Virus record (IMG/VR): IMGVR_UViG_3300050120_000152
Coordinates: 124,001-188,000 of that record
DNA: 64,000 nucleotides
Strand: one strand, 5' to 3'
A program made the position numbers and the translations under genes. This document shows, one piece after another, positions 1 through 57,703 of this stretch. The notes under the pieces are model-generated. The model was not told the DNA's origin, did no database searches, and saw only the letters and a list, made by a program, of their open reading frames with translations. The first letter of the stretch is position 1; each line of letters opens with the position of its first letter.

Positions 1-232
1 GCATTGATATGCATTTTCATGGTGCCAATTCTTATACATTAAGTATCAATGAATATCTCAAACGATTACTCACTTACACGATTAAGCCTATTAAGATTTA
101 TGTAAATAAAGTGGCTTTAAACACTATTGAACCTAAAGCGTTACCACCAGTCATCACACCTATTGAAATTGATTTGACCAATGTGGTAGAATCAGATGAT
201 GATACACCACCATCAACAACCGAAGGATAATT

Positions 233-421
233 ATGAATATTGCAGGAAAGATCGCTGGGATTGTTACATATATTTTACTATTACTTACTGTCATCTATGT
301 TGATTTGACCGCTAATGTAGACCTTTTTGGTCATCTTGTATTTGCCCTCGCTATCGCATTCATTGTGGTTTGTGGTTTGGGCGTTTATAAAGGTGGCGAT
401 GCATCATCTGACCCAGAATAG
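233..421 (+). CDS. small membrane protein
   Basis: 62 aa with two hydrophobic helices; RBS GAAGGA. Confidence 0.6.
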   Translation: MNIAGKIAGIVTYILLLLTVIYVDLTANVDLFGHLVFALAIAFIVVCGLGVYKGGDASSDPE

Positions 422-1071
422 ATCAAACAGGTCAAATAATTATGTTATTATGTAGTAACAAACCACTTAACAAATTAGTGAACAATTTTTTCAATGATAT
501 TGCAAATATTCTTCATCATGTACGAGATAGGGTATCTGATAATAAAGTGTTGAAAGAAGTTGTCTCTCTAAGAGAAACTGTAGTTGCTACTCAATTAAAA
601 TTTGATCCTGATGAAGATTATTCAGAACTTATTGAAATTATAAAATTTTTGGATATTCTTGAATATGTGGTGTTATATACCAAAGAAACGTGGGAATCTT
701 GATATGTCATATTGTCGATGTGGTACTAATAGTGATATGTATGCTTATTGTAGTGGTGATACATATGAATTAATTTTTGCTGGTGCAAAGTTAAAAGAAG
801 GCTCACGTAGACGTTGGAAATATCTAAGTGATATGATGGCTAATAATAATGGTAATCCTCTTAAACAAAGCTCATTATGGGCCGAAATGAAAGAATTGTG
901 GGAACCTATCCCACTCAAATTAGATAAAGCGTCTTATATATTTGATACTCCACGAGAACTTTACAACAAAATGTTGGAAGGTCAAACGGCAGGTTACAAA
1001 GTGCCAAAATATGTTCTAAATCACGTTTTGGCTGATGCCAAATCTTATGAAAAAACAATTAAAGGAAAAAT

Positions 1072-1461
1072 ATGACTGTCGAACATTTTATTCAAGCTAT
1101 TATCGCTATTTCAAGTAGTTATAATTTTTGGCCTTATTGGGTTCCTATCATTATTTGTCTTGTTGGTTATATCTTCAAGACCGTTAAAGAATATAACGAA
1201 GATGTGAAGAATCGTGCTGATTATCTCAGTCAACCAGATTCTGCGCAAATTCAAAGGCGATATATACCAGAATTAGTAGTGGGTCATTTAGTTGGCCGAC
1301 TATTGGTATCATTCATTCCAGTCGTAAATTTTTGTATTGCCTTATTCGTATTTCTTCCAACGCTTGCTCGTGATATCATTGACGTTTGCAGTAATTGGTT
1401 AGATATTCCGCTTGTACCAAAGAAAGAGAAAGCTACTGCAGTAGAAATAAACTCATACTAA
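1072..1461 (+). CDS. hypothetical membrane protein
   Basis: 129 aa with hydrophobic segments; overlaps upstream stop; AAGGAA RBS. Confidence 0.6.
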   Translation: MTVEHFIQAIIAISSSYNFWPYWVPIIICLVGYIFKTVKEYNEDVKNRADYLSQPDSAQIQRRYIPELVVGHLVGRLLVSFIPVVNFCIALFVFLPTLARDIIDVCSNWLDIPLVPKKEKATAVEINSY

Positions 1462-1572
1462 GATTCATATAAGATATATTGTAAATAATCATTTGCCTGT
1501 CACGGTTAATAGACAAGATGAACACACTAGTAATGGTATAATACTCCCATCATAACAACAGGAGAATCCATT

Positions 1573-1923
1573 ATGATTACTAATAAAAATAATAAGAACA
1601 AAAGTATATTATTAGGTTTGATGCTCGTTACACTTGCTACTTCAGCACTTGCCGAAGATATGATAGTACACACAACTATCCCTACAGGGAAAGAATTAGT
1701 AGGTATGTCGGCCAGTGATAGCCGAACCTATATCAACGGTATTCTTGTCAGTGATTTGCATAAGAATAAAAGTTGGACATGTTCAGAAGGGAAAAATTGG
1801 ACGATTGATGCTAGAGATGATTTGATATTGAAGAAACTCAATGATAACGCTACCGAGCAAATGAAACCTGCACCCGAAGCTATCTGGGATGTTTACAAGG
1901 ATGCATGTTCGACTCCTATGTGA
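1573..1923 (+). CDS. secreted protein, Rap1a/Tai4-immunity-like
   Basis: Signal peptide, then TGKELV..TYINGIL..C..C pattern; own promoter, AGGAGA RBS and terminator. Confidence 0.4.
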   Translation: MITNKNNKNKSILLGLMLVTLATSALAEDMIVHTTIPTGKELVGMSASDSRTYINGILVSDLHKNKSWTCSEGKNWTIDARDDLILKKLNDNATEQMKPAPEAIWDVYKDACSTPM

Positions 1924-1945
1924 TATCATAGACAAGATCGAGCGC

Positions 1946-1975
1946 AAAACAAGCCCCTTTCGGGGCTTGTTTTTA
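1946..1975. terminator. intrinsic terminator
   Basis: AAAACAAGCCCC-TTTC-GGGGCTTGTTTT. Confidence 0.85.
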
Positions 1976-2389
1976 TTGTCAAAACTCTTGAATTAGAGTG
2001 ATACTCTATGTATAATACGAAAAGGTTTTTGGAACAATTCATCAGGAAAAATCATGAATTTTAAATATATTTTAGTATCATTTACTCTACTATCAATGTC
2101 AACCACTAAAACTGCAACATCTTTTCAGATATACAACTGATGATGAAATTACACCCAGAAAAATTAAATATTGTAGATATTCTTGCTATGCTTTATCTAG
2201 GCTTTATCTACTGGATATGTATCTATGTAGGTATAACTGCTGCATTTACCGGGCAACGGGCTATTCTATCTATGATAGGCCTGTTATTTGGTGCAACATC
2301 TCTCGCTACAGGAAACATGATTAGATATTATTTGTATGCTGGAATTATTACTCTTGACAAATGATATAAATAAGATATACTAGATTTAT

Positions 2390-2459
2390 GTAGAAGTCTT
2401 CTAAGCAGGATATACCCCATCGAGGGGTAAGATATTGGTATCGAATCCAAAATTCTACG
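2390..2459 (+). ncRNA. degenerate tRNA-like RNA (loop CAUCGAG)
   Basis: Acceptor GTAGAAG/ATTCTAC, stem TACCC/GGGTA, 8-nt T-loop TATCGAAT; lacks U33. Confidence 0.5.
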
Positions 2460-2465
2460 CCTAAT

Positions 2466-2473
2466 TATAAATA
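2466..2473 (+). promoter_or_regulatory. T4-type late promoter TATAAATA (also 3702, 11816, 41150 on +; 6535, 41104 on -)
   Basis: Exact TATAAATA just upstream of tRNA genes and of both minus-strand HNH genes; T4 gp55 consensus. Confidence 0.65.
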
Positions 2474-2480
2474 GATTTAT

Positions 2481-2567
2481 GCGTCTTTGGGTGAGTGGCT
2501 GAAACCATCAGTTTTCCAAACTGAAACCTGCGAAAGTAGGTCAAGAGTTCGAATCTCTTAGGACGCT
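2481..2567 (+). tRNA. trnG: tRNA-Gly(TCC) with long variable arm
   Basis: GCGTCTT/AGGACGC, U73, TCAGT-TTTCCAA-ACTGA, variable hairpin CCTGC-GAAA-GTAGG. Confidence 0.85.
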
Positions 2568-2574
2568 CAAATAT

Positions 2575-2645
2575 GCGGGATTGGCATATTGGTTGTGTCT
2601 CAGATTTCCAATCTGATCAAAGGAGTTCGATTCTCCTATCCCGCT
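2575..2645 (+). tRNA. trnG: tRNA-Gly(TCC)
   Basis: GCGGGAT/ATCCCGC, TCAGA-TTTCCAA-TCTGA, AGGAG-TTCGATT-CTCCT; CCA not encoded. Confidence 0.9.
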
Positions 2646-2680
2646 CATATGATAAATAGTATAAGTAACGGAAACGGCTT

Positions 2681-3325
2681 ATGTATACTGTTTATCAAAC
2701 AACATGTCTTGTGAACTCCAAATTTTATATTGGAGTTCACAAGACAGATGATCCAAATGATGATTATCTCGGATCAGGAAAAGTGCTAAAACGAGCTATC
2801 GAAAAATATGGTGTCTCATCTTTTAAGAAAGAAATATTGCACATATTTGATGAAGCAAGAGAAGCATTCTTGAAGGAACAAGAATTGGTTACTGAAGCTC
2901 TTATAGCAAGTGATTTATGTTATAATTTGAAGCTTGGTGGTCAAGGTGGATGGGAATATAATAATGATGGCTCGGAAGAGCATCGAGAAAGATGCAAAAT
3001 TGGTGCGCTAAAAACTAATCAGATATTAACACCAAATGCTCGCCGTGAACGTAGTCGAAAATCTGCGAACACTAAATGGAAAACCAATTATGATAAAATG
3101 GCAGATATTAATAGAAGAGTATCTAAACAATCTTTAGAATTGAAAATTGGTATATATTCCGAATTAGCTATAGAAAATCGAAAGAGAAAGTTTAAAGAAA
3201 TAAATCATCAATCAGGATCAAAAAATTCAAATTTTGGTACTATGTGGATTACTGATGGAATTTCAAATAAAAAGTTAAAGAACACTGACAACATACCAGA
3301 ATTTTGGTATAAAGGTAGAGTTTAA
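2681..3325 (+). CDS. Seg-like GIY-YIG homing endonuclease
   Basis: VYQTTCLVNSKFYIGVHKT..YLGSG..YNL N-terminal domain; located in tRNA cluster like T4 segB. Confidence 0.85.
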   Translation: MYTVYQTTCLVNSKFYIGVHKTDDPNDDYLGSGKVLKRAIEKYGVSSFKKEILHIFDEAREAFLKEQELVTEALIASDLCYNLKLGGQGGWEYNNDGSEEHRERCKIGALKTNQILTPNARRERSRKSANTKWKTNYDKMADINRRVSKQSLELKIGIYSELAIENRKRKFKEINHQSGSKNSNFGTMWITDGISNKKLKNTDNIPEFWYKGRV

Positions 3326-3350
3326 ATTTTTCATCATATGATGCCCAAGG

Positions 3351-3527
3351 GTCAGGATAGTTCCGATGGTATCTAGTCTGAATGACATTATATGAGTTAG
3401 ACCATCAGTTATTATGTGGGTCGCGCTACCTTGACCGGATAGCTAGTTAGGAAATAAACCTGACGAATAAAATGGCAATTCAATAGCCATAAAAATCTCA
3501 AACTTAGAGAACACAAGTCGTCCTGAC
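3351..3527 (+). ncRNA. candidate structured RNA
   Basis: GTCAGGA/TCCTGAC closing stem enclosing at least 4 hairpins; ORF-free. Confidence 0.45.
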
Positions 3528-3593
3528 AGACGTTATCCATAATTGACATACAAGAAATTTAGTCGATTTCTTATTATGGAGTCAAAATTTTAT

Positions 3594-3688
3594 GGAAGAA
3601 TAAGCCGAGTCGGTCTAGCGGTGGCTCATTCGAAATGAGAAGGCCCATGAAAATGGGTGTGAGAGTTCAAGTCTCTCTTCTTCCGCCA
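3594..3688 (+). tRNA. trnS: tRNA-Ser(CGA)
   Basis: GGAAGAA/TTCTTCC, G73, CCA, loop TTCGAAA, long variable arm. Confidence 0.92.
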
Positions 3689-3716
3689 GTTTTACAATTT
3701 GTATAAATAGATTTAC

Positions 3717-3811
3717 GGAAAAGTGTCCGAGAGGCTTATGGTGATATCTTGGAAAGATATTGAGCCAGCTTAAAACTGGCTCCGTGGGTTCGAATCCCTC
3801 CTTTTCCGCCA
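3717..3811 (+). tRNA. trnS: tRNA-Ser(GGA)
   Basis: ATATC-TTGGAAA-GATAT, long variable arm, G73, CCA. Confidence 0.93.
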
Positions 3812-3906
3812 ATTTTAAAACCCGTAGCTGGTCAGGGCTAACGCCACCATCGCTAACACTGGACAATGGGTAACCAGTAGTGTATAATAAGTATTAAATT
3901 TGTAAT

Positions 3907-3999
3907 GGAGAGCCTACCGTATTGGTGAACGGCACGGTCTTGAAAACCGTTTGATCCCTGAAAGGGGGTTTGTGAGTTCGACTCTCACGTTCTCCGCCA
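3907..3999 (+). tRNA. trnS: tRNA-Ser(TGA)
   Basis: ACGGT-CTTGAAA-ACCGT, long variable arm, G73, CCA. Confidence 0.93.
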
Positions 4000-4009
4000 A
4001 TTATAATAT

Positions 4010-4065
4010 GCCTGCCAGTGGCTTACGAGCCACGTTCCATCCGGAGAAGGGTGGGGTGGGCACCA
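4010..4065 (+). ncRNA. D-armless 56-nt tRNA-like RNA
   Basis: GCCTGCC/GGTGGGC-A-CCA; GTGGC-TTACGA-GCCAC; CCATCC-GGAGAA-GGGTGG. Confidence 0.65.
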
Positions 4066-4336
4066 ATTTGATTAACATTAAAATATATTACGGACGATTA
4101 CGAAACGTCTTATATGAAAGTTGCGGATTGTACCCATGTATTGAATAATTCGGCTGTGCACAGTGTCAGAATGAGTAGATACGTATCGCGCCCATTAAAC
4201 ATGGGCAAGGTTGATTGATCATTTTCCATAACGTGGGGTTCTGTTAATCAAAATTTTATTAGCCACCATTTATGAATATGAATGGTGGTTTTTTATTGAG
4301 TTGACACTTTAGTTATACGTGATAATATGACGATAT

Positions 4337-4435
4337 GCCGGGCAATTTCCAGTATTTGCTGGTACGAATCAATAAGAGTTATCATTGCTGATACAGTGAT
4401 AGCACGTAGGGTAGAATAAACCCAACCCGGCTCCA
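4337..4435 (+). ncRNA. CCA-ended tRNA-like RNA
   Basis: GCCGGG/CCCGGC-T-CCA; three internal hairpins; follows a TTGACA/GATAAT promoter. Confidence 0.6.
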
Positions 4436-4745
4436 ACTAAGGAATAATAATGCACATTTTTGATGTTGACACCATGCATGGTAATGTATACAATCGCTTG
4501 AACATCGCCTTGGGTGCATTAAAGCGATATGCGATTTATCATAATAAAAATGTGGTTATAAATCGGATGTATCTGTCTGGTACTGAAATCAAATTGAATA
4601 TTTCTATTAATGGTTGTATGTTTTTACTGACCATGGATCAAGATAGGATTACAATTTCTAAATTTAATGCGCAAACTTCGGTATCTACAAATTATCCAAT
4701 AACAATAGATCAAATTGACGATGGTACTTTTATGGAAAATTTAAA

Positions 4746-4925
4746 ATGAAAATTTATAAAATAGAATCGGGTGACACATTAAGTCAGCTTGCAAAATACT
4801 TTGATGTTTCGTTATCTGCTATCATGTTTGTTAATCCAACATTAATCAATGCTGACAATATTATTGCAGGAGATTGGCTTTACATTCCTACTATTCTTCA
4901 TCATGCTCTTGAAAAGACGTATTGA
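4746..4925 (+). CDS. stand-alone LysM domain protein (59 aa, below ORF-track cutoff)
   Basis: MKIYKIESGDTLSQLAKYFDVSLSAIMFVNPTLINADNIIAGDWLYIP is a textbook LysM pattern. Confidence 0.85.
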   Translation: MKIYKIESGDTLSQLAKYFDVSLSAIMFVNPTLINADNIIAGDWLYIPTILHHALEKTY

Positions 4926-4966
4926 CAAATAACATTAATGTGATATAATGTATATGTAATGGCGGT

Positions 4967-5095
4967 ACACGGCGGTATGAAGAATTTGGGAATGGGCGTG
5001 GAACATCATCGGCAAATGTGTTTCTTTGGGATGCCATATCACCGCGCCTACCGTGCGGAGTCCTCTGGACATAGGCCAACTCACCGATGCCCATT
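4967..5095 (+). ncRNA. candidate pseudoknotted RNA
   Basis: GC-rich island; CACGG/CCGTG, GCGGT/ACCGC and crossing AATGGGC/GCCCATT. Confidence 0.4.
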
Positions 5096-5521
5096 ATACA
5101 TATATTGACATGTAGTATAGTATCACTTAAGTTAACCAACGGCGTATAATAATATTGTATTATTGTCCGAGTTTGCTTGTTTCTCCCACCTGTAAATGGA
5201 TTATGTGTATACGCATTATTCATGATAAAGTCTTCAAGTGCCAAGGTTGGCAAATTACCGACCAAAAGTGGGAAACCGTTGGAATATTTTAAAATTTTTG
5301 TTATAGAGTAGCTATGATTGGGTAGTAAGCGAAAAGTTTGAGAAAACTTGCCATAGAAGGTTAAAGCCCTGTAGATGAATTCGAATTTCATATGAATTCC
5401 ACAACCAAAGCAAATTCTAGAAATTGTGAGTAGAGTGACAGGAGCGATCTATAACAAATATTATTGTGTTGCATGTGTCAAAACGATGTGGTATTATGTT
5501 AAACATAAAGGAAAGTAATTA

Positions 5522-5698
5522 ATGAAGACTGTAAAGAAAGAATTTGTTGAGGGTGTTGAACGTAAGCATCGCCAGAATCGTAATACCTTGGCTTCTCTTT
5601 TAAAGAGTCGCGCAAAGATTTTTTGGGCAACTACCAAAGGTACGTATAGTGTTGGTAAAAATGCTGCAAAACGTGCGAAAAAGTTGAAAACAGCATAA
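5522..5698 (+). CDS. small basic protein (58 aa)
   Basis: MKTVKKEFVEG...AKRAKKLKTA; AAGGA RBS; promoter upstream. Confidence 0.65.
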   Translation: MKTVKKEFVEGVERKHRQNRNTLASLLKSRAKIFWATTKGTYSVGKNAAKRAKKLKTA

Positions 5699-5721
5699 AT
5701 AGAAATACAAAATTAAATTGA

Positions 5722-5799
5722 TGCGAGTTATATTAACGGTAGATTGGATGGCTCATAACCATCATATGGATTAGGGTTCGAATCCCCCACTCGCCACCA
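5722..5799 (+). tRNA. trnM: tRNA-Met(CAT), initiator-like
   Basis: GATGG-CTCATAA-CCATC; U1:C72 mismatch; A73; CCA. Confidence 0.85.
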
Positions 5800-5814
5800 T
5801 TAATAAAGCCAAGA

Positions 5815-6507
5815 TTATATCTTGGCTTTATTTTTACTACGATACCCTTTTGGTGGCTTAGTTATTTGTAACAATTTACACCGATGATTAATAGCATTAT
5901 CAGATACATTATAATATTTTGCTACATGAACTATTGGAAACTTCCATACTAATTGCTCTAATTCTTCTTTAGTTGGATCAAATTTTCTATGAATTATTTT
6001 TGGAGGTTTTTCTTTCTTATTATTTCTTCCACAATATGTAGAAGTCTGCGAATGACAATTTGGGCAAAGAAAACACAGGTTCTCTAATCTATTATCATTT
6101 CCGACACCATTTTTATGTTCTAGATGCAATACTAAAGGTTTTCCTTCATGGAATCCTTCATTTGGACAAGCATTGCATTTATATTCAATAATATTATGTT
6201 TTAGTATATATTTTTTAAATTTTTCTCGTTGTGCAGTAGAATTTTCTATAAACTCTTCAGCGCAATTTCTTGATTTTTTAAATTGTAATAATGGATTACG
6301 ATTCTTTAAAAAATTTTGATGATTAAGTTTAAATTGCGATAAATCTATACCTTGCTTTTCAGCAATTATTTTTATGGTTCTATAAGTTCCCCCTGTAGTA
6401 GCATTAACCTCACATTTTGTTAATATTTCATGTAAGCTGTTTGATGTATCATAAAAATCTTGTAATTGTTCTTTAGATATATCCCATATTTTTGAATAAC
6501 GTGCCAT
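5815..6507 (-). CDS. HNH homing endonuclease
   Basis: CNAC..LHLEHKNGVGNDNRLENLCFLCPNCHSQT; late promoter upstream. Confidence 0.9.
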   Translation of the reverse strand: MARYSKIWDISKEQLQDFYDTSNSLHEILTKCEVNATTGGTYRTIKIIAEKQGIDLSQFKLNHQNFLKNRNPLLQFKKSRNCAEEFIENSTAQREKFKKYILKHNIIEYKCNACPNEGFHEGKPLVLHLEHKNGVGNDNRLENLCFLCPNCHSQTSTYCGRNNKKEKPPKIIHRKFDPTKEELEQLVWKFPIVHVAKYYNVSDNAINHRCKLLQITKPPKGYRSKNKAKI

Positions 6508-6650
6508 GATTCGAACCTATTTGTTGATTCATAGTATTTATACAAGTTCGAATCAAATGTCATATACGTACTTGACATGATAAATAAATCTGTTATACTT
6601 AACTCAAGACAACAAAATGTGATGTGGGCATATCCTCAACTTCATGCGCA

Positions 6651-6693
6651 GGGATATCATCGGGATATCATCGGGATATCATCGGGAAATCAC
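6651..6693 (+). repeat. 11-bp tandem repeat GGGATATCATC x3 plus partial copy
   Basis: Read directly from sequence. Confidence 0.85.
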
Positions 6694-6949
6694 GACCAAT
6701 TTGAAACTTCGATACTAGTCCTCCCGCGTTTTTCATGAAAACATAAGGCTTAACCGCGTGTAGTATCAACCAATTTATATTGTTATCCTCTGAAAGATTT
6801 AGCGATTTACAGCAATGTGATAAACCGTCTTGATTATGCTAGTATCTGTAGCTTGTAGACATTGCAGTGAAGAGTAATCATTAGAATAACGGCAGTGCTA
6901 GGTTCCGCCATGATAACATTTCTTTTTACTAACTTTATGAGGACATATT

Positions 6950-7345
6950 ATGAAAACTACGTTAGAACTTTTGAAAGCTGAGGGCTATGAGCCCATCAAA
7001 ATGCCAAAGACCATTAAAAATAAGTGGTTAAATGCTTTACGTTCTGGTGAATATGATCAAGCAACGGGAGCATTATATGATGATAATATTGATGGTGATG
7101 GGAATCCCGGTTTTTGTTGCTTAGGTGTCTTGCAACATTGTTTGACAGGTGGTGTAGAATTCGATGGTGGTATATCTGGAGCAGTTCCATCCGATGAATG
7201 GCTTGATGAATTTAATATTAAAACTAATGACTTTCAAGTCTTTTACAAAGATGATGTACAAACTTTGGCAGACCTCAATGATTGTGAAGGCTTGACCTTT
7301 AAGCAAATCGCTAATATCATTGAAAAACAGGTCGTTGGTGTTTAA
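6950..7345 (+). CDS. WxxALRSG-family phage protein
   Basis: WLNALRSGEY, FCCLGVLQ, LNDC..FKQIA; paralog of the 33.4-36.3 kb array. Confidence 0.8.
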   Translation: MKTTLELLKAEGYEPIKMPKTIKNKWLNALRSGEYDQATGALYDDNIDGDGNPGFCCLGVLQHCLTGGVEFDGGISGAVPSDEWLDEFNIKTNDFQVFYKDDVQTLADLNDCEGLTFKQIANIIEKQVVGV

Positions 7346-7355
7346 AGATTAAGTT

Positions 7356-7498
7356 GCAGTAATGACGGAATTGGTAGACGTGGCGGACTAAACCGACCTC
7401 TGAAAAGTAGAGAGGATAATCGTTAGATAATGGTGTAAATCGGCTGTCCTAGTTACTAACGTATCGAAGACGTGTAGGTTCAAATCCTACTTATTGCG
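7356..7498 (+). ncRNA. tRNA-Leu-like scaffold with about 58 extra nt replacing the anticodon arm
   Basis: GCAGTAA/TTATTGC, Leu-type D arm GACGGAATTGGTAGACGT, T arm GTAGG-TTCAAAT-CCTAC. Confidence 0.7.
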
Positions 7499-7507
7499 AT
7501 GTTTTAT

Positions 7508-7624
7508 ACGTACATAGCTCAGTCTGGGAGAGCAGCCCCGTAGGAGGGGTAAGTTAAATCAATTTGACGTTTAGGCGTTGCAATGCGATACTGGTCGGTG
7601 GTTCGAATCCATCTGTGCGTACCA
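7508..7624 (+). ncRNA. expanded tRNA-like RNA (Pro-like D arm)
   Basis: ACGTACA/TGTGCGT-A-CCA; GCCCC-GTAGGA-GGGGT; 46-nt two-hairpin variable region; canonical T arm. Confidence 0.7.
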
Positions 7625-7723
7625 AATTTAGGAGAATCCCGGTTCGATTCTGGGAGTGCCATGGGCAATGCACAGTCAACCCCGGCGCTAGATTATACGG
7701 CTAAATCGCCTTTAATAAATCAT

Positions 7724-7802
7724 GGGAGCGTAGTTTCAACATAGGTAAAACACGATGCTGGCAGCATTGAGAACCGGGAGCATGTCCACGGCGCATCCAC
7801 CA
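7724..7802 (+). tRNA. atypical tRNA-Ala(GGC)
   Basis: G3:U70, A73, CCA, CGATG-CTGGCAG-CATTG; T-loop AGCATGT is non-canonical. Confidence 0.55.
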
Positions 7803-7871
7803 TATAATACATTGACACTCTAATGAGATTAAAGTATAATTCAAACTCATTTTACTTAGCGAGGGTTATCT

Positions 7872-8429
7872 GTGATGGACAAGAATTTATTTTCTGATGA
7901 AGAATATGCAGAATTGTTTTCTGATGAAACTTCTGTAAAACAGCGTAAAGCTTTGCTTAAACAAGCATCATTGCGGGTTAATTACTTAGTTCATATGATC
8001 TGTACTATGTTTAGCTATAAGTTGGATTGGTGGGATTTTGATAATGAAGATAGGGATGTTGAAAAACATGGTCATTTTGATCCTGATGTTTATACCAAAT
8101 CTATTAAGGTAATTGGGGACTGGAAATCCTTTAATAAAAATAATGAACCGGCAATCAAAGCTCTTGGTGATTATCTACAAGATTATTATAATGAGTTTGA
8201 GTTTGAATATGGATATATACCTTCTGGCTGGTTGAAAGAAGATATAACTGAAGATTTGCAACAACATGTTGACACGTTTTTGAAGGTAATTTATCCGCAA
8301 CAACAGACTACTGAGGCTGCAAAAAAAGCTGCAAAGGATACACATTTGCGTGCTTTACGCAATTCTATCAAAAATAAATTAACATCCGAAGAATATGCTT
8401 TGATTACCTTTCCAAAGCATTTGTTATAA
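7872..8429 (+). CDS. hypothetical protein
   Basis: 185 aa ORF with promoter and GAGG RBS. Confidence 0.65.
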   Translation: MMDKNLFSDEEYAELFSDETSVKQRKALLKQASLRVNYLVHMICTMFSYKLDWWDFDNEDRDVEKHGHFDPDVYTKSIKVIGDWKSFNKNNEPAIKALGDYLQDYYNEFEFEYGYIPSGWLKEDITEDLQQHVDTFLKVIYPQQQTTEAAKKAAKDTHLRALRNSIKNKLTSEEYALITFPKHLL

Positions 8430-8434
8430 AATAT

Positions 8435-8501
8435 GGTAAGTGCTGGCTGGCTCGGGATCATGACCTGATACAAGTAGGATCGTTCCCTACGCTTACCACC
8501 A
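8435..8501 (+). ncRNA. truncated tRNA-like RNA
   Basis: GGTAAGT/GCTTACC-A-CCA; GTAGG-ATCGTTC-CCTAC; D arm reduced. Confidence 0.55.
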
Positions 8502-8924
8502 ATTTAGAGAATTATCATGGATTTATCAACTTCAATCGAATATCGTGAAATATTCAAAATACATTCAGAATCATTTTCTTACTTACGTAGAAAGAATGGC
8601 AGCAAAATAGCTCCAAATTATGATAGTATTCGTGGGTACGGAAGTCAATACATGCATCATTCGTTTAATTATGCAGATATGACTTATAATAATTACAAAC
8701 GATTTATGATTGCTAGAGTTAGACAATGTGAATCTATTGGCCATTATCATGGTATGATTGTAAATCGTGGTGGTCATCCTAAAACGAATACGACTGAAAC
8801 ATGTTATCGTCATTTGCGACGAATGATTAAAGATGGCGTATTACGAATGGAAAAGCGAAAGGCATATGGTAGAAACATTTTATCGGTACTGGTTGTTGTA
8901 TAATAATAATAATTATAGAGATAT

Positions 8925-9067
8925 GTAGTACGAGGGAGCTAGGAAACCCAACGGCACTGAAGCCGTCGCCCATAAAGAATCTTAAGAGCTTGGTCAAAAT
9001 AGGGTTAACACTGTTAGATTGAGTGATATCAGGGCTTGCCACGAGCGTTACGTGTGGTACTACACCA
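8925..9067 (+). ncRNA. 143-nt CCA-ended RNA
   Basis: GTAGTAC/GTACTAC-A-CCA; ACGGC-ACTGAA-GCCGT; CACG-AGCGTTA-CGTG. Confidence 0.6.
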
Positions 9068-9083
9068 AATATAGAGAGTTACA

Positions 9084-9476
9084 ATGGATCAAATCATACT
9101 ACATACTGGCAATTATTCTAAAATTCCTAGAAATACAAAAATTTTGGGAAGTATTATCTTTACAGAACAGGAAATGTCCGATATCGGTTATCAGTTAGGA
9201 TGTGATGATTACGCAGTAAGTACAGAAGTCTTTACAAATTCTGAACATGTATTTAATGGTCTACGTTTAGCTATTTTAGATGGTAAAATGCCTTTTGATG
9301 GTGTTACTATTGTTAATCATTATGGTTCAGACGAACATTCAATATATTTAAGATTTGATAAATTTGCGAATGTAGTAGGAACTGATAGTTATCATATATT
9401 CAATCAATCCATTGATGATGTGTCTAAAATATTATTGAAACAATCGAATAAACGCAAGCTTGACAAAATGATTTAA
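9084..9476 (+). CDS. stand-alone DUF3696-like protein
   Basis: TNSEHVFNGLRLAI...RFDK...IFNQSIDDV resembles the C-terminus of ABC-type AAA ATPases. Confidence 0.45.
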   Translation: MDQIILHTGNYSKIPRNTKILGSIIFTEQEMSDIGYQLGCDDYAVSTEVFTNSEHVFNGLRLAILDGKMPFDGVTIVNHYGSDEHSIYLRFDKFANVVGTDSYHIFNQSIDDVSKILLKQSNKRKLDKMI

Positions 9477-9661
9477 AGTGGTAATATACATACATCAAAG
9501 CGCAACGTACATGGTAAACATTACATTATTACTTAATATACTCATACCGTTGTTACTGATTGCGCTTAGTTTTTTGTTTGGTTGGACTATATTAGGATTC
9601 ATATTAATAGGTGGACCATTTATCATTTTTGTTTAATGTTACAAGTGTTTTAAATTTTTAT

Positions 9662-9944
9662 GGCTCGTGGCTGATACACTGCAATCATCGGCAGCAAGGC
9701 ATCCCTTAAAGACTTGAGGGGGAGTACGAGAGGTAAGGAAGGTTATTGTCACTGTGATGCAGAAGGATCAAGTTAAGTCTGCGGAGGGGTGGATCGTTAG
9801 TAACAAATGAGCTAGATGGCGACGATCTGTGAGTAAAATCTCACTAGAATATTGACGAAAAGAAGATCACTTTTCCGAGTTCTATGACAGAATAAACCGA
9901 CTTTATAAGTAGTTGGAGCGGTTAGCATCGCTCCCGAGCCACCA
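9662..9944 (+). ncRNA. 283-nt CCA-ended structured RNA
   Basis: GGCTCG/CGAGCC-A-CCA; GAGCG/CGCTC T-arm-like hairpin; at least 5 internal helices. Confidence 0.6.
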
Positions 9945-11335
9945 GTTTTACAGATGAGTAATCAAAGTGGGAAATGTTATTGAGGGTTCGAAACCAAGAT
10001 AACCAAAACTTTGGTGGAAGTTGGTTAGAGGCACGACTGAAACTGTGCAGAGAAATCAATGTCCCTTGGATTCTCTACTATTAAAATCCCTATACAAGCG
10101 TATCAAGGGTGCGGGTGATAATAGACAAACCATTAATTAGGAAAAGTATGTTAGACAAATTAAAATTGTGGAATTACGTATCATTATTGAGCAGTCAATG
10201 TCAATATTATAACAATAAAAATTTCGAAAAGTCGGAATTTTTGCTTAACGTGTTAGATAACTTGTTTAATGTATTTTCTAATGAAGAATTAGATTGGTTA
10301 GCTGATAACGTATTTAATGCTCAAATTGATTGGGAATACCCAATTAAAGCTGCAAGTGTCACTATTGATCTGATCCAGAACATCGACAAGCCTATCATCC
10401 AATATGATAGTATGTCTGGACAATTAAGTCTTGAATATACGTATAAGATAGATAACAAAATATGCTGAATTGATATATTTCATAAAGCTAAAGTAGATAG
10501 GCTGATTAACTATAAAGGCATCCCGTGTGGTAACCACTGTAATTTTATGAAAAGAAATTCGTTATGCTGATGACCCAAAAAGCCCTTTCGGGCTTTTTTA
10601 TTGTCTATTAATGTGTTATACTGACCATCTATTAACTCATCTGGGATGAAGTCATGCAAGTCTTGTTTATTGTACTAATGTTTGTATTGATAATTATTAT
10701 TTCAGCATGTAATTACACCTACAATCCTAATATCGGTGAAGGCATCATGATTCGCTTCATGTCTACACTATGTTTATTGATGTGCAGTCTGTTTTGCTTC
10801 GGATATACTCGGATTACCCCTACCCAGACCACCCAAGAGATTATTAGGGACATTGCTGTATGCAAAGCCGCTACTGTTCCCACACCAACATGTAACAATG
10901 GTTACATTACTATTGAAGTAAAATAATTATGACAACATGTAAAACAAAATGTGAATGCGATGTTTGTAAATATTCCGAGGAAGTAGCAGTTAACCTTGAG
11001 TTTGTTCATGAAGATCATCGTGAATTTTTCGAAGACCTTTATATGCGATATTGTGCAGAAGCTATGGATGCTGATGTTAATATGTGCATTATTGAAGGTT
11101 CATGGCCTACTGCTAATGAATATATCATTTCTGCACGCAAACGCACTGGAATTCCGTTACCAATCATAGAGTAATTTATGCAAGAACATATGCGAGAAAA
11201 TGGATTAAGTCAAGGTTATTACTGTATGCGCTGCGGTGGTGTATGCAATCTATTAGCAACCGGCCATGGCGTCTATCAATGCCAACCCAACCCAGAACTA
11301 GTAGCTAAGCTTAATGAATTAAATAAGGATATTAA

Positions 11336-11566
11336 ATGAAATATTTACTTTTGTGTGGCATCATTGTATTATTGTCTGGTTGTTATCGTCAACCTTTGTA
11401 TGCCATGGCCGATTATACTTTAGTATACGATTACAATGGTTGTGCATTTTTTGTACGTCCAGTACCACATGCATTTTTTCAAAATGATAAAAGTTATGTA
11501 GAGCGCTATTATCCGGGTGATAAAGATGCGTGCGTCAACCATTCACTTAATAAGGATGCGAAATGA
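11336..11566 (+). CDS. lipoprotein
   Basis: Lipobox LLSGC; YDYNGCAFFV motif shared with next gene. Confidence 0.7.
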   Translation: MKYLLLCGIIVLLSGCYRQPLYAMADYTLVYDYNGCAFFVRPVPHAFFQNDKSYVERYYPGDKDACVNHSLNKDAK

Positions 11567-11799
11567 AGAAATTAATTTTACTGTTGCTTATTGTATCAAC
11601 TTTGGTTGGCTGCTCTTATAGAAATATCTATGTTATGTATGACAATAGAGGCTGTGCATTTTCTGTAATCCGTAATACAGCAAGGGATACAAGGGATGAT
11701 ACATGGGATACATCCGGGGGATCAGCTTATCAAGCAACTCTACAGCGTTTGAGTACAGAAGATAAGGCAACTTGCCCACTTTCAAAAGAAGCAAAATAA
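11563..11799 (+). CDS. lipoprotein (paralog of previous gene)
   Basis: Lipobox TLVGC; YDNRGCAFSV. Confidence 0.7.
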   Translation: MKKLILLLLIVSTLVGCSYRNIYVMYDNRGCAFSVIRNTARDTRDDTWDTSGGSAYQATLQRLSTEDKATCPLSKEAK

Positions 11800-11844
11800 A
11801 AGTTTGACAAACTTGTATAAATAGATTATGATATACAATCATTA

Positions 11845-11923
11845 CGGGGTGTAACTCAGTCTGGTCTAGAGTGCGAGGTTTGGAACTTCGAAGCCGCTGG
11901 TTCAAATCCAGCCGTCCCGACCA
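11845..11923 (+). tRNA. trnP: tRNA-Pro(TGG)
   Basis: C1-G72, CGAGG-TTTGGAA-CTTCG, CCA. Confidence 0.93.
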
Positions 11924-11967
11924 ATTTTAATATTCATAGTTTCCCAATCTATGTCTTAGATTCATAT

Positions 11968-12044
11968 CGGAATGTAGCTCAGTTTGGTAGAGCGTACCGT
12001 TCGGGACGGTAAAGTCGCAAGTTCAACTCTTGTCATTCCGACCA
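11968..12044 (+). tRNA. trnP: tRNA-Pro(CGG)
   Basis: TACCG-TTCGGGA-CGGTA, CCA. Confidence 0.93.
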
Positions 12045-12057
12045 TTTTAAATAGTTA

Positions 12058-12131
12058 CAGAGTGTAATATCAATTGGTAGATGGCGAGCTTTGGAAGCTT
12101 GAGGTTGCTGGTTCAAGTCCAGTCACTCTGA
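12058..12131 (+). tRNA. trnP: tRNA-Pro(TGG)
   Basis: CGAGC-TTTGGAA-GCTTG; CCA not encoded. Confidence 0.9.
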
Positions 12132-12225
12132 CATTAAATAAAGCGCCCAATGGGCGCTTTATTTTTGTTTTAATAGTTCATATCTAATGATTCTGACATA
12201 AATACATAGAATAAAGAAATTATCT

Positions 12226-12845
12226 ATGTATATTGTATATAAAACAACAAACATCACCAATAAAAAATTTTATATTGGTGTACACAAAACCTCAAATTTA
12301 GATGATGGATATATTGGCTCAGGTAAGATTTTAAAGCGTGCTATAAAAAATATGGAATACAAAACTTTTATAGACAGATACTTTTCATTTTTGATAATTC
12401 CAATGACGCGTTTTCAAAAGAATTGGAATTAGTAAATGAAACTATGTTACTTGATCCTCTGTGCTATAATTTAAAAATTGGCGGTGAAGGTGGCTTCGAT
12501 TTGATCAATCGAAAAGGTCTTGCAGTTCAACATATTACAAAAGAGAATCAGGCTGAAATATATAAAAAAGCCAAAGCAGTTATACAATATAAATTAAAAA
12601 ACGATGATGATTATAGAAAAAAATGGTCAAACAATTCTAAACAAAAAATGCTAGGTAACCAGAATTGGTTAGGTAAAGAACATTCTGAAGAAACTAAACA
12701 GAAAATGAAAATTAGTCACAAAGGTCAACATAATGGCACCAAAAATTCACAATATGGTACAATGTGGATAACAAATGGATTGATTAATAAGAAAATTGAT
12801 AAAACTGCTGATATACCCGATGGATTTATAAAAGGCCGAGTCTGA
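12226..12845 (+). pseudogene. Seg-like GIY-YIG endonuclease with a 1-nt frameshift
   Basis: Paralog of 2681-3325; adding one A to the A6 run at 12345-12350 restores AIKKYGIQNFYRQILFIFD and joins both track ORFs. Confidence 0.8.
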
Positions 12846-18568: not shown

Positions 18569-19059
18569 TTATCATATTATTAAAATATAAAAAGTTTGTA
18601 CACGGTTTTATATAAATTTATTAATTGCAAGTACATGATTATTAAAATATAAAAAAGGTTGACATAAAATATTTTCATGTTAGTATAAATACTCTAACAC
18701 GTTCTCCATATACCAGTATGCAAAAAAGAAAAGCGTTCTCACTTTCAATGAGAATTTGTGCCGGGGCAGGGCCGGTCTGGTATACCAATTAAGGTTTACA
18801 ACGCTTCAAGTCCAGCGTGCAGTGTCACGGGATTGAAGAAGGTCGAGGAACCAAGAATTTTGAGTCAAAGAGACTCTATTCATCACATCATAAACAATAA
18901 TGCGGCAATATCCTCTATTTGTAATCAGACTATGCGTTTCTCCTTGAATTGTGTTTCCAGCTGACCAAATACGGTATTCGGTATTGACTCTTACAGGAGT
19001 TTGAGTTAATATCGCTATGAAGTAGAACATACGGTTGGTTAAATCTACAAAAGTTAAGG

Positions 19060-24957: not shown

Positions 24958-26109
24958 TCAGTCCGTTGAAGCACATTCGTCTGAAATGTTAAAATCTTTA
25001 TAATGCTTAATAAGCCAAGCTTTGTCATCAAATGGTTTACCAGTATAGTAACTCATAGCTACATTGAACATCATAGGTTCTAGTTCATCTTTAGCCTTCA
25101 AAGCAAATTCTTTGCGCGATAATAAGGAATTATCATGAAAAAATTTAATAGGTGCGTCAAGCTTTTTATATAATTTTCTAACAATTAATTCCATTTCATC
25201 AATACGATTAAGTAAATATATATCATGACTAAAATGAGCCCTTACATCATCACTTAATTCATTAACCACGCACTCAAATAAGTTACGTGGATGAGTTACA
25301 TTGTCTTTCAGTGAATGTAGATTTTTGTACCAGTCACATTTTACTTTAATGTTCATACCATCAACATTGATAACATATCCTTCAATATCTTTCATATTTG
25401 GAATATTGTCTACGAATTCGATCAATTTAACTGGATCAATATCATAAAAATGGTCTTTCACCAAATGCTGAACACAACCAAATTCCTCCATGTCAGATTG
25501 TAACATACTATATGGATAATCCATACCATTCGTCAAATCTCGTGCCGAAAAAATGGTTAAATTGGTTTTTTGATACGGTAAAACAATTCTAAATTTTGCA
25601 TCAGTAAATTCCATACTTACAGAATATCCCTTATGCATCATGTACATGAGGAAATTATGCAACGTTGAGTTTTCTTCCAGCTGAAGAAATTCATTTGCAG
25701 CAATAGCTTGGTCGGATTGTAATGCAGTCTTAGACTTCAAATAAACCATGTCAGCAATAGGAAGTTTATAAGTAGTCATAATACTACCATCCATCTTGTC
25801 CATGATAGATCGAGTCTTGCTGAAATCCAAATTCATTGCCATTTGATTTTCGTTCAAATTAAAAAATTTGCGAGGGGTAAGTGCTGCCAACGATTCATAC
25901 TTATCATCTTTAGTAATGAAAGTAATTCCACGGCATTCCAAAGCCGATGGCTTCAAAAAATCAGTATAGGATGCAAGACGATAAGTGAACACACGGAATT
26001 GAGTACCGTTGAACAGATGGTCAACATAATAAAATGGGCTTTCGTCAGATTCGCATAATGCCATCAAATCTTGATAAAGATCACGGCCATATTGAGTTTG
26101 AACAGTCAT
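24958..26109 (-). CDS. rnlA: T4 Rnl1-like RNA ligase
   Basis: ECRG, KFFNLNE, motif I KMDGS, EGYV, KVKCDWY. Confidence 0.92.
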   Translation of the reverse strand: MTVQTQYGRDLYQDLMALCESDESPFYYVDHLFNGTQFRVFTYRLASYTDFLKPSALECRGITFITKDDKYESLAALTPRKFFNLNENQMAMNLDFSKTRSIMDKMDGSIMTTYKLPIADMVYLKSKTALQSDQAIAANEFLQLEENSTLHNFLMYMMHKGYSVSMEFTDAKFRIVLPYQKTNLTIFSARDLTNGMDYPYSMLQSDMEEFGCVQHLVKDHFYDIDPVKLIEFVDNIPNMKDIEGYVINVDGMNIKVKCDWYKNLHSLKDNVTHPRNLFECVVNELSDDVRAHFSHDIYLLNRIDEMELIVRKLYKKLDAPIKFFHDNSLLSRKEFALKAKDELEPMMFNVAMSYYTGKPFDDKAWLIKHYKDFNISDECASTD

Positions 26110-28450: not shown

Positions 28451-28540
28451 TGGCGGGAGTAGTGGGAGTCGAACCCACGACGTTTAACATTAAATGCATG
28501 GATTTAGAATCCACCGCTCTGACCACTGAGCTATACTCCC
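28451..28540 (-). tRNA. amber suppressor tRNA (anticodon CTA)
   Basis: GGGAGTA/TACTCCC-G-CCA; GTGGA-TTCTAAA-TCCAT; 19-nt variable region; canonical D and T arms. Confidence 0.88.
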
Positions 28541-41179: not shown

Positions 41180-41321
41180 GGGCGTATGGGGGAATTGGTA
41201 GACCCGGCAGACTCATTGAAGTCTTCTAGAAATAGAAGATTTTGTAAAATAAATTTAATAGTTTATTTTACAAAATCTGCTTCCGAAAGGAGTCCCGGTT
41301 CAAGTCCGGGTATGCCTACCA
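41180..41321 (+). tRNA. trnL: tRNA-Leu(CAA) split by a 57-nt insert (41215-41271)
   Basis: Removing the insert gives an 85-nt Leu cloverleaf with GCAGA-CTCAAAA-TCTGC. Confidence 0.85.
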
Positions 41322-47741: not shown

Positions 47742-47790
47742 AACGATAGGAGCGAATGCTACCTGTCCTACCGCAAGCGTTAGGACTTAA

Positions 47791-48198: not shown

Positions 48199-48345
48199 AT
48201 TACCTTATCATGATGACAGCCCATCCATTATTTGTCAAGCATCATTTAATTATGAATCAATCCCTAATATGTTACATGTAATGCTTGACATTCTAGTTCC
48301 ATATTCTATAATTCATCTATCGAATCACACAAGGCAACGCCTACT

Positions 48346-51537: not shown

Positions 51538-51633
51538 ATCCACTCCATGATGAAAAAGAAATTTGAAAATAATGCTTGACGCTATCCCTGTAATCGCTTA
51601 TAATACTTCCACACCAACCAACGGAGCAAAACA

Positions 51634-56772: not shown

Positions 56773-56890
56773 GGGTTTGTACGCAGATGGCATAGCGGCT
56801 GTACAGTAAGGCCAGTGTGGCAACATTGTTGCCGATTATTATCGAGTTGATCGGTTCTAATCTTCGTGGGTTCGAATCCCTCCCTGCCCA
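56773..56890 (+). ncRNA. expanded tRNA-like RNA (Tyr-like, loop CAGUAAG)
   Basis: D arm CGC/GCG, 50-nt variable region with hairpins, T arm GTGGG-TTCGAAT-CCCTC; weak acceptor stem. Confidence 0.55.
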
Positions 56891-57657: not shown

Positions 57658-57703
57658 AAATAATGATTGACAGTACCGTTCCAAGCTGTATAATGTAATT
57701 CAT

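Follow-up and report, generated by a model that had tools for sequence, protein, structure and literature searches.

A battery of structurally diverse tRNA-derived elements among ordinary tRNA genes in the tRNA island of an uncultivated XacN1-like jumbo phage

The tRNA island and its nine tRNA-derived elements

We describe nine tRNA-derived elements that lie among ordinary tRNA genes in a 64,000-nucleotide (nt) stretch of viral DNA, hereafter the window, which comprises bases 124001-188000 of IMG/VR virus record IMGVR_UViG_3300050120_000152, a 340,344-bp sequence with direct terminal repeats. An original prediction, made from the letters of the window, had placed at least eight tRNA mimics of 56 to 283 nt between positions 2390 and 9944, most of them with an encoded CCA and interleaved with real tRNAs. 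Sequence inspection and folding confirmed a tRNA-derived element of the proposed size at each of the eight positions, on the tRNA strand, and the interleaving was borne out by six ordinary tRNAs that ARAGORN and Rfam call in the same interval (Gly twice, Ser three times and Met). The count, however, was too low, as a ninth element lies at 7724-7802. All nine are on the plus strand, where they fill gaps between small open reading frames (ORFs). They were defined by reading and folding the sequence, and their 5' flanks were not used in choosing them. Throughout, C1-C8 denote the eight predicted positions, and the ninth element is named by its coordinates (Table 1).

The identical sequence is present in three peat metagenome runs, and pieces from two low-coverage runs match it exactly, with zero variants. 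Elsewhere in the genome, large ORFs match a T4-like family-B DNA polymerase, baseplate wedge and hub proteins, and a helicase. The nearest cultivated phages by polymerase identity are Xanthomonas phage XacN1 (46.7%), Xoo-sp13, Stenotrophomonas phages CM1/RAS14 and Ralstonia phage RsoM2USA. A tRNA island of early type, belonging to an uncultivated jumbo phage that is XacN1-like, occupies the first 10 kb of the window. The whole genome of this phage holds 40 tRNA matches by Rfam and 39 calls by ARAGORN.

All nine elements share an acceptor helix of 6-7 bp, on whose 3' strand a hairpin is stacked, and a discriminator base. The proposal that a paired acceptor stem is retained holds for C2-C8 (6-7 bp), while C1 pairs at six of seven positions and a predicted outlier at 56773 at five of seven. 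Six of the eight predicted elements end in N-CCA, as claimed for most of them, C1 ending instead in GCC-U and C4 having no CCA; with the ninth element, the CCA is encoded in seven of nine. The complete combination of a 7-bp acceptor, discriminator, CCA and stacked T arm is found in C2, C5, C6, C7 and 7724-7802 (the latter with an A·A mismatch), and the others fall short of it by one acceptor pair (C3, C8), by the missing CCA (C4), or by both a mismatch and the missing CCA (C1).

Beyond these shared features, the elements sort into three structural classes, and the set is mixed, not uniform. The first class contains 7724-7802 (anticodon GGC), C6 (CAU) and C1 (possible anticodon UCG), which are probably eccentric decoding tRNAs, with C1 possibly decaying in this genome. 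Their anticodons are readable and they look like eccentric working tRNAs, so the label of mimic, which had been applied to all elements alike, does not fit them. Both C6 (loop AUCAUGA) and 7724-7802 (loop CUGGCAG) have a 5-bp anticodon stem and a 7-nt loop with U33 and a purine at position 37; the C1 loop, CAUCGAG, also has 7 nt but carries A33. With G3:U70, A73 and its GGC anticodon, 7724-7802 reads as a tRNA of coherent alanine identity, and the canonical tRNA-Ala(UGC) of the genome shares its acceptor features. Its oddities are a T loop of the sequence AGCAUGU, a bulged T stem and the single acceptor mismatch, and ARAGORN detects it in mitochondrial mode only. The T loop of C6, AUCGUUC, is of an A54/U58 type.

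The second class (C4, C5 and C7) is made up of tRNA bodies that carry inserts of 40-80 nt and in which the loop in place of the anticodon is closed or of odd size. C4 combines a class-II D arm with a canonical T arm, and its anticodon arm is wiped out by an insert of about 70 nt. C5 presents a purine-rich loop at the anticodon position and a 45-nt variable region folded into two hairpins. C7 has a 3-bp D-like arm, a 5-bp stem at the anticodon position, an insert of about 80 nt and the T-like loop AGCGUUA. In C5 and C7, as in the tRNA at 41789, the anticodon-position loop counts 6 nt and would grow to 8 nt on opening of a C32:G38 pair. The third class (C2, C3 and C8) keeps only an acceptor/T-like minihelix and the CCA; these three elements and C4 are without an anticodon stem-loop of tRNA type. 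C2, which starts 10 nt past tRNA-Ser(UGA), is made of a UACG-loop hairpin and a second hairpin abutting the acceptor. C3 has three hairpins, one with the T-like loop AGAAUAA, and forms the leader of ORF 4450-4749. The interior of C8 is not tRNA-like.

Table 1. Positions of the tRNA-derived elements and of the features discussed with them (window coordinates unless another accession is given)
Feature	Position	Strand	Basis and structure
C1, 72-nt tRNA-shaped RNA	2390..2461	+	Fold; acceptor 6/7 paired, 8-nt T loop
C2, 56-nt three-way junction	4010..4065	+	Fold, -29.9 kcal/mol, z -3.05; 7-bp acceptor, ACCA
C3, 99-nt cloverleaf-like RNA	4337..4435	+	Fold, z -4.6; 6 G-C acceptor pairs, UCCA
C4, 144-nt class-II-type tRNA body	7356..7499	+	Fold; 7-bp acceptor, without CCA
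C5, 117-nt tRNA body	7508..7624	+	Fold; full cloverleaf, canonical D and T arms, ACCA
Eccentric tRNA-Ala(GGC)-like element, absent from the original prediction	7724..7802	+	Fold; cloverleaf, ACCA
C6, 67-nt tRNA	8435..8501	+	Fold; 10-nt connector in place of D arm, ACCA
C7, 143-nt tRNA-derived RNA	8925..9067	+	Fold; 7-bp acceptor, ACCA
C8, 283-nt RNA	9662..9944	+	Fold; 6-bp acceptor-like helix and abutting 8-bp hairpin, ACCA
Eccentric tRNA-Glu(UUC)-like gene	18710..18787	+	No D arm, T loop GGCAGGG
142-nt class-II tRNA with insert	41180..41321	+	Anticodon-loop insert of about 56-63 nt (CUCA...AAA, would give Leu-CAA)
tRNA with odd anticodon loop	41789..41863	+	Rfam-positive (54 bits); loop 6 nt (8 nt if C:G pair opens)
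Degenerate tRNA-like element	56773..56890	+	Canonical T arm, acceptor 5/7, without CCA
Unannotated elements of phage XacN1	AP018399.1: 30282-30390, 36856-36980, 39195-39342, 47790-47869		Scan of first 50 kb
Two canonical tRNA-Gly(UCC) genes	2481..2646	+	ARAGORN, Rfam; first is 88 nt with class-II-like variable arm
Seg-like GIY-YIG homing endonuclease ORF within tRNA island	2681..3325	+	
Three canonical tRNA-Ser genes (CGA, GGA, UGA)	3594..3999	+	ARAGORN, Rfam
Canonical tRNA-Met(CAU)	5722..5799	+	ARAGORN, Rfam
Sigma-70-type promoter-like site	2354..2381	+	TTGACA-16-TATACT; ends 8 nt before C1
Promoter-like site	4301..4328	+	Ends 8 nt before C3
Perfect-consensus promoter-like site	7812..7840	+	Heads unit ORF185-C6-ORF128-C7-ORF130-ORF52-C8
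Intrinsic-terminator-like hairpin and T run	4261..4290	+	Closes Ser/C2 transcription unit
Terminator-like hairpin	10577..10598	+	Downstream of C6-C8 unit
T4 Rnl1-type RNA ligase gene (tRNA repair)	24961..26109	-	

Tests against chance, 5' leaders and relatives

The elements have diverged beyond the reach of the standard model: the Rfam tRNA family (RF00005, gathering threshold 29 bits), run over 13 kb with E up to 10, reports neither C1-C8 nor 7724-7802. Acceptor pairing with a CCA is not significant by itself, as about 200 hits per strand compare with about 135 in shuffled sequence. A strict test, which asks for a 7-bp acceptor, an adjacent T arm of 5 bp and 7 nt, and then N and CCA, gives 38 matches on the plus strand of the genome and one on the minus strand (a real suppressor-type tRNA), against about 0.1 per shuffled genome. 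Eight of these matches are not found by Rfam, namely C5, C6, window positions 18710 and 41180, and positions 117332, 119832, 318706 and 318868 of the whole genome (G000). A GC-rich 6-bp closing helix followed by NCCA that also closes the minimum-energy fold is found in the first 13 kb in C3 and C8 only, with 0.05 expected. C5 and C6, by their tRNA geometry, and C3 and C8, by their GC-rich 6-bp helices, are therefore far beyond chance. A plainer test (7 bp, CCA, closure of the fold) has a background of about 2.7 per 13 kb, so C2 and C7 rest on their additional tRNA features and on the leader motif described below. No paralogues of the elements were found within the genome, and hence they are not recent duplicates.

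The sequence immediately upstream of the elements provides an independent line of evidence. Canonical tRNAs of this genome have A at position -2 in 28 of 38 cases and U at -1 in 26 of 38, giving a consensus of U-A-U before +1. Among the tRNA-like elements, the corresponding figures are 17 of 20 and 18 of 20, against an expectation from base composition of about 0.11 for the dinucleotide; eight of the nine island elements begin directly after an AU leader. The related virus G002, introduced below, has this motif in front of its tRNAs and its tRNA-like elements alike. Bacterial RNase P is known to favour U at -1. Since the motif is shared, the predicted 5' ends look like real processing sites common to tRNAs, which lends sequence-based support to the earlier suggestion that the tRNA 3' end may act as a processing scaffold.

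The collections hold hardly any close relatives. Megablast of the region against GenBank phages returned nothing, and a distant mode matched the Seg-like endonuclease ORF only. Scanning IMG/VR with the polymerase identified four contigs at 56-59% identity, including G002 (174 kb, 59%), which has a tRNA region, and G003, which has a small one. The neighbouring ribonucleotide reductase (RNR), tried as another route to relatives, led to an unrelated tRNA-free contig, RNR being horizontally mobile. The tRNA region of G002 is collinear with ours, with the order Gly(UCC), C1-like element, Ser(CGA), C5-like element, two Pro and a Glu-like element, and G002 has at least nine tRNA-shaped, CCA-ended elements of its own other than standard tRNAs.

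The best conserved element is C5, whose counterpart at G002:155504-155622 has the same architecture (117 versus 119 nt). Their T arms are identical at 17 of 17 positions and unique in each genome, and they share at the anticodon position the hairpin GCCYC-GU(A)GGA-GRGGU; across 21 stem pairs there are seven double changes, one one-sided change and no broken pair. C1 corresponds to G002:162681-162756, with an identical 11-nt hairpin core and the loop CAUCGAG. Five of their 12 stem pairs differ by double changes, and the sole unpaired position is C1's own mismatch, the G002 counterpart being pristine, unlike C1. A tentative counterpart of C4 (G002:162490-162594) has the same T stem and type of D arm. 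Outside the island, the element at 18710 corresponds to G002:139403-139489, with identical acceptor and anticodon loop (UUC) and four double changes in the anticodon stem. A bona fide tRNA-Pro, taken as a control, shows this pattern too in G002: its core is identical, and changes in the acceptor and T stems are compensated throughout.

These comparisons bear on the earlier argument that retained pairing despite divergent sequence speaks against neutral decay, for which covariation across relatives had been proposed as a check. The argument stands for C1 and C5 (and tentatively C4), whose stems stay paired through five to seven double substitutions while loop motifs are conserved; it does not extend to the decay signs of C1 itself, C4 and 56773. 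Likewise, the check gave compensatory changes against G002 for C1 and C5, and found no counterpart for C2, C3, C6, C7 and C8. Single-sequence covariance models of C2 and C6 recovered no orthologue in G002, G003, G004 or XacN1, the C6 model picking up only a tRNA-Phe with the same type of T loop, and no counterpart of C3, C7 or C8 was found in the relatives.

Wider scans returned structural parallels. A pattern scan of IMG/VR with the C5 T arm gave 41 loci, with a true homologue in G002 only. As many as 22 of the 41 are long-insert tRNA-shaped RNAs with intact acceptors and inserts of 30-65 nt in the D loop, anticodon loop or variable region, and since they lie in unrelated viral contigs, RNAs of this kind extend beyond the present clade. 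A scan with the C1 hairpin motif gave 102 loci; among those inspected, only the one in G002 is real. A scan of viral and metagenome contigs with the clade-specific tRNA-Pro core again found G002 only. In cultivated XacN1 (AP018399.1), the first 50 kb contain four unannotated tRNA-shaped, CCA-ended elements of 80-148 nt, some of them in a 2.5-kb stretch free of annotated features, and the ORF-tRNA-ORF layout is likewise present. XacN1 also keeps (at 39053-39138) the unusual tRNA-Gly(UCC) of window positions 2481-2568, which combines a D loop of class-II-like form with a long variable arm and measures 86-88 nt in the two phages, and additionally has 86-91-nt Lys, Thr, Cys and Asn tRNAs.

Unusual loops, interrupted tRNAs and the transcriptional setting

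The genome as a whole holds about twenty tRNA-like elements. As for the two outliers of the original prediction, the one at 41789 is a tRNA that Rfam recognizes and that has an odd loop, whereas 56773 is a weaker case. A distinct group is formed by insert-bearing tRNAs (window 41180-41321 and 57704-57809; G000:119832-119981 and G000:319035-319160), in which the acceptor, D, T and anticodon stems are intact and inserts of 30-75 nt lie inside the anticodon loop. Joined loop ends would yield Leu-CAA, Ile-UAU, Ile-GAU or Lys-CUU, and Asn-GUU; of these anticodons, several are otherwise absent from the genome and would serve abundant codons. These anticodon-loop inserts are too short for group I introns, and an archaeal-type tRNA-splicing endonuclease was not found in the genome. 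A MAFFT alignment of the interrupted Asn-like gene with tRNA-Asn of G003 was uninformative. We also considered whether the long island elements are tRNAs bearing group I introns and rejected this, as positions 1-13000 give no match to Intron_gpI at E up to 10 and, except in C8, the inserts of 40-80 nt are below the size of such introns (about 200 nt or more).

The readable anticodons of the eccentric elements are mostly absent from the canonical set: GGC (7724-7802), UUC (18710), CUU (G000:318706) and UCG (C1). They fit codon demand: for the second of these, GAA is used at 41.8 versus GAG at 6.7 per thousand, while the sole canonical tRNA-Glu has the anticodon CUC. Two eccentric tRNA-Lys genes (G000:318706-318780 with CUU; G000:318868-318943 with UUU and C33) have 6-bp D stems and odd T loops, and both adjoin a canonical tRNA-Lys(UUU). 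Lysine tRNAs are the classic targets of PrrC and PARIS. An amber-suppressor-type tRNA of 90 nt with the anticodon CUA, labelled Pyl by ARAGORN, lies at window positions 28451-28540 on the minus strand, and XacN1 likewise has two CUA suppressors.

Unusual loops recur with regularities of their own. Among 58 elements of strict geometry from G000, G002 and G003, seven of the 11 non-canonical T loops have A54 and U58, the reverse of the universal U54-A58, and the T loops of C3, C7 and 7724-7802 obey the same rule. This class (AGNRUNN or AUCGUUN) recurs in tRNAs and tRNA-like RNAs (for example 8435-8501, G000:318706-318780 and G002:150033-150107), and none was seen in the scanned stretch of XacN1. 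At the anticodon position, nine of 14 eccentric loops fit C-N-N3-4-A-G, in which a C32:G38 pair could close the loop to 5-6 nt; the frame C-(A/G)-N3-4-A-G is found at window positions 2390, 7508, 8925 and 41789 and at G002:162681, 162490, 150033, 149952 and 155504. U33 is absent from 10 of the 14 loops and present in 59 of 61 ARAGORN-called tRNAs, a comparison that is partly circular because detectors favour U33. For some of these loops, here and in G002, ARAGORN gives anticodons of two or four bases.

The elements lie in units bounded by promoter-like and terminator-like sites. The strongest sigma-70-type matches (11-12 of 12 positions) are all on the plus strand, several of them at element-bearing units (Table 1). 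Element starts lie 5-25 nt after stop codons, and element ends about 15 nt before the next start codon. The small ORFs around the elements are without homologues: for the 128-aa ORF, IMG/VR contains no relative, and the sole match of the 184-aa ORF among 5.8 billion proteins is to itself. Two ORFs in the island are of the mobile endonuclease type. As to functions elsewhere that touch RNA, the genome codes for a CCA-adding-type nucleotidyltransferase and for P-loop kinases, and no RelA/SpoT was found in it. The gene for the Rnl1-type ligase overlaps the start of a DUF488 ORF (26081-26650, minus strand), and the pair may be a functional unit.

Other promoter-headed regions in the window appear to be non-coding. 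A perfect-consensus promoter at 4922-4949 lies upstream of a structured stretch (4956-5100) with a closing helix of 9-10 bp and a folding energy of about -40 kcal/mol, which is not tRNA-like and is overlapped by an antisense ORF of 166 aa. Another promoter (6572-6599) is followed by about 340 nt (6607-6940) without a convincing ORF; this region contains an 11-nt unit (GGGATATCATC) in three tandem copies and has a short match to G002 at about 160200-160221, within a CCA-ended fold of 281-316 nt there. The last 20 kb of the window (about 44000-64000), over which G+C climbs from about 0.35 to 0.42-0.46, hold further such regions (57395-57660), upstream of the insert-bearing tRNA at 57704.

Known analogues and interpretation

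The closest characterised analogue of the battery is the pair of T4 species 1 and 2 RNAs (rnaC and rnaD), small stable RNAs encoded in a phage tRNA cluster, on the tRNA strand and beside a Seg GIY-YIG gene (segB). In our folds, the canonical T arm of rnaC leads into an acceptor-like closing helix, and the island elements share with the T4 RNAs their location in a phage tRNA cluster, their strand and a tRNA-like 3' domain. The closing helix of rnaC is, however, imperfect and without an encoded CCA, while here most elements join a perfect 6-7-bp helix to an encoded CCA; T4 has two such RNAs, compared with at least nine in 8 kb here and more in the genome; and there is no sequence similarity. To our knowledge, the function of the T4 RNAs has not been found in the fifty years since they became known.

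Phage tRNAs that evade host defences offer a second comparison. According to a known idea, loop changes make phage tRNAs hard for host anticodon nucleases to cleave (van den Berg et al. 2023, PMC10264068), and phage tRNAs enable escape from retron and PARIS systems (PMC11555353, PMC12409363). These tRNAs resemble ours in having anticodon loops unlike those of the host, which would explain the first class with its non-U33 loops, C32:G38 pairs and altered T loops. They differ in being canonical, detectable cloverleaves with 7-nt loops, whereas the present elements have a remodelled D arm, T loop or loop size and several cannot decode. Relevant to the latter, the defence nuclease Cas12a3 reads only the tail, acceptor and T arm of a tRNA, whatever its anticodon (PMC12851939). 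In outline, C6, with its short connector for a D arm and its other arms kept, and the element at 18710, without a D arm, recall the "bizarre" mitochondrial tRNAs such as D-arm-less tRNA-Ser(AGY) and the armless tRNAs of nematodes (reviewed in PMC7609411). Those tRNAs are organellar and have co-evolved synthetases and ribosomes; the present candidates belong to a bacterial virus.

Other RNAs share the logic of a tRNA-like end. In the case of MHV68 vtRNA/TMER and mascRNA, a tRNA-like fold lets RNase P, RNase Z and the CCA enzyme make a stable, non-aminoacylated small RNA. These depend on eukaryotic RNA polymerase III and RNase Z and carry microRNA hairpins as cargo, so the likeness is one of logic, not of family. 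C8, long and with ends that form an acceptor helix, an abutting hairpin and ACCA, resembles tmRNA, an identity that we rejected because its third acceptor pair is C:G instead of G3:U70, it has no canonical T loop and no tag ORF was found, and neither ARAGORN nor Rfam gives a tmRNA call. YrlA is likewise a non-coding RNA with a tRNA-mimicking module and occurs in phages too; its tRNA-like part is internal, however, and its ends form a Ro-binding helix. The sole match to its model (RF02553) scores 27 bits against a threshold of 69 bits and falls over the real tRNA-Pro genes at 11870-12024, not over the candidates. The XacN1 genome paper reports 29 tRNA-like sequences per terminal repeat (26 canonical, two suppressors and one pseudogene) and describes no such battery, and a comparative review of jumbo phages covers RNA repair and not RNAs of this kind. 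Our literature search found no description of such batteries in jumbo phages.

Taken together, we propose that the battery comprises matured tRNA-derived RNAs whose functions differ by class, an explanation that is the best overall and that we hold to be narrowly probable. Its best-supported step is tRNA-type maturation, with RNase P processing, stability and function inferred from sequence. Because the elements keep what maturation enzymes read, the most likely course is excision by RNase P and 3' trimming, after which they persist as stable CCA-ended RNAs. The coaxial acceptor/T-like helix of 12-14 bp, the discriminator, the CCA and the leader would serve as recognition features for RNase P, trimming and CCA enzymes. 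RNase P would cut the elements out of their transcripts, 3' trimming would follow, and the mature products would accumulate as small RNAs in the manner of T4 species 1 and 2. Members of the first class would supply decoding with loops and arms unlike those of the host and, for that reason, might be poorly read by host tRNA nucleases. The second and third classes would be non-decoding mimics of tRNA bodies, competing for those host factors that read the acceptor, T arm and CCA. A decoy role, which the original prediction had also raised, draws its plausibility by analogy from defences that read precisely these parts.

Several observations weigh against this interpretation. The covariation comparison rests on G002 as the single informative relative, and the compensatory counts are only as good as the orthology, as judged by synteny and shared motifs, because both partners were chosen for paired stems. 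Five of the eight predicted elements (C2, C3, C6, C7 and C8) are without a counterpart, a pattern that rapid turnover or junk could explain. Decay is visible in C1, C4 and 56773 (mismatch, missing CCA, lost anticodon arm), the fold z-scores of C4-C7 are unremarkable (-0.6 to -1.1), and this analysis ties no element to any defence system.

A more far-reaching version of the same idea, which we consider unlikely though worth stating, is a parallel, defence-hardened tRNA system. It would combine decoders rebuilt to escape reading by host tRNA nucleases (non-U33 C-R-NNN-A-G loops, A54:U58 T loops, loss of the D arm) with CCA-ended, non-decoding tRNA bodies and minihelices, as expendable decoys for effectors that read only acceptor, T arm and tail, and with tRNAs bearing 30-75-nt inserts elsewhere in the genome that would require protein-catalysed cut-and-ligate splicing by Rnl1-type repair enzymes.

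It is rather doubtful that the elements are neutral relics, that is, tRNA pseudogenes created by duplication, insertion and homing-endonuclease traffic in a fast-evolving island and awaiting deletion. Such an origin would account for C1, with its mismatch, 8-nt T loop and lack of CCA next to a pristine counterpart in G002, for C4 without anticodon arm and CCA, and for 56773 with its 5/7 acceptor; the five elements without counterparts, the two mobile endonuclease-type ORFs and the weak z-scores of C4-C7 fit it as well. Yet six of the eight predicted elements keep a perfect acceptor, an abutting hairpin and the CCA despite divergence past detection by the tRNA model, and the leader motif is kept. 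Moreover, the stems of C1 and C5 have changed by double substitutions without a break while their loop motifs stayed fixed, there are no paralogues that would mark recent duplicates, and the anticodons fill gaps instead of duplicating canonical genes.

Equally doubtful, in our estimate, is the possibility that the elements act in cis as punctuation, with modules that provide RNase P and 3'-processing sites to split polycistronic early transcripts or to set mRNA half-lives, and with excised RNAs that have no role of their own. The arrangement of promoter, ORF-C6-ORF-C7-ORF-ORF-C8 and terminator between 7812 and 10598 has this appearance, as do the tight spacing to stop and start codons, the position of C3 as the leader of ORF 4450 and the ORF-tRNA-ORF layout shared with XacN1, and the features common to all elements are exactly those of a minimal RNase P substrate. 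Punctuation has no use, however, for a D arm, a T-loop motif or a loop kept constant at the anticodon position, but loops of that kind are conserved between G002 and both C5 and C1; nor does it call for the coherent alanine identity read in 7724-7802, and real tRNAs could, and already do, serve that purpose. For the second and third classes, the conserved loop motifs argue, at the level of sequence, against both pure junk and pure mRNA punctuation.

Still less likely is that all or most elements are working decoders, in which 7- or 8-nt loops with C32:G38 (C-R-N3-4-A-G) form nuclease-proof readers of triplets and quadruplets (+1 frameshift) and the insert-bearing genes are spliced. The loop statistics are suggestive: of 14 eccentric loops, nine conform to C...AG with A37 and 10 are without U33, and ARAGORN calls anticodons of two and four bases in both genomes. 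The insert-bearing genes would make up for the lack of Asn-GUU, Leu-CAA and Ile-UAU, which serve abundant codons, and Rnl1 and P-loop kinases are encoded. Against this, C2, C3 and C8 have no anticodon-like arm of any kind, no tRNA-splicing endonuclease was found in the genome, and non-U33 loops decode poorly in known systems. Finally, chance stem-loops in AT-rich intergenic DNA are very unlikely: although acceptor pairing with CCA is common and the plain fold-closing test has its background of about 2.7 per 13 kb, the strict test finds 38 matches on one strand where 0.1 per genome is expected, the GC-rich 6-bp test finds two where 0.05 is expected, and the leader motif is present even though it played no part in the selection.

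In the interpretation that we favour, the battery is an enlarged, structurally diversified version of a known but unexplained kind of phage RNA, interspersed with probable working tRNAs that escape the detectors. The "extra" stable RNAs of the T4 type would thus exist here at a much larger scale, with nine or more within 8 kb and some twenty genome-wide, and the phenomenon is common to the related uncultivated phage G002 and to cultivated XacN1. Recognisable structural classes and the availability of XacN1 make the question experimentally approachable. Standard detectors miss probable working tRNAs, including Ala-GGC, Glu-UUC, Lys-CUU and the interrupted Asn, Leu and Ile genes, which leaves published tRNA counts and codon-compensation analyses of jumbo phages incomplete. 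Should the decoy or hardening reading hold, these RNAs would add an RNA-based layer of counter-defence to what is known of tRNA-targeting bacterial immunity.

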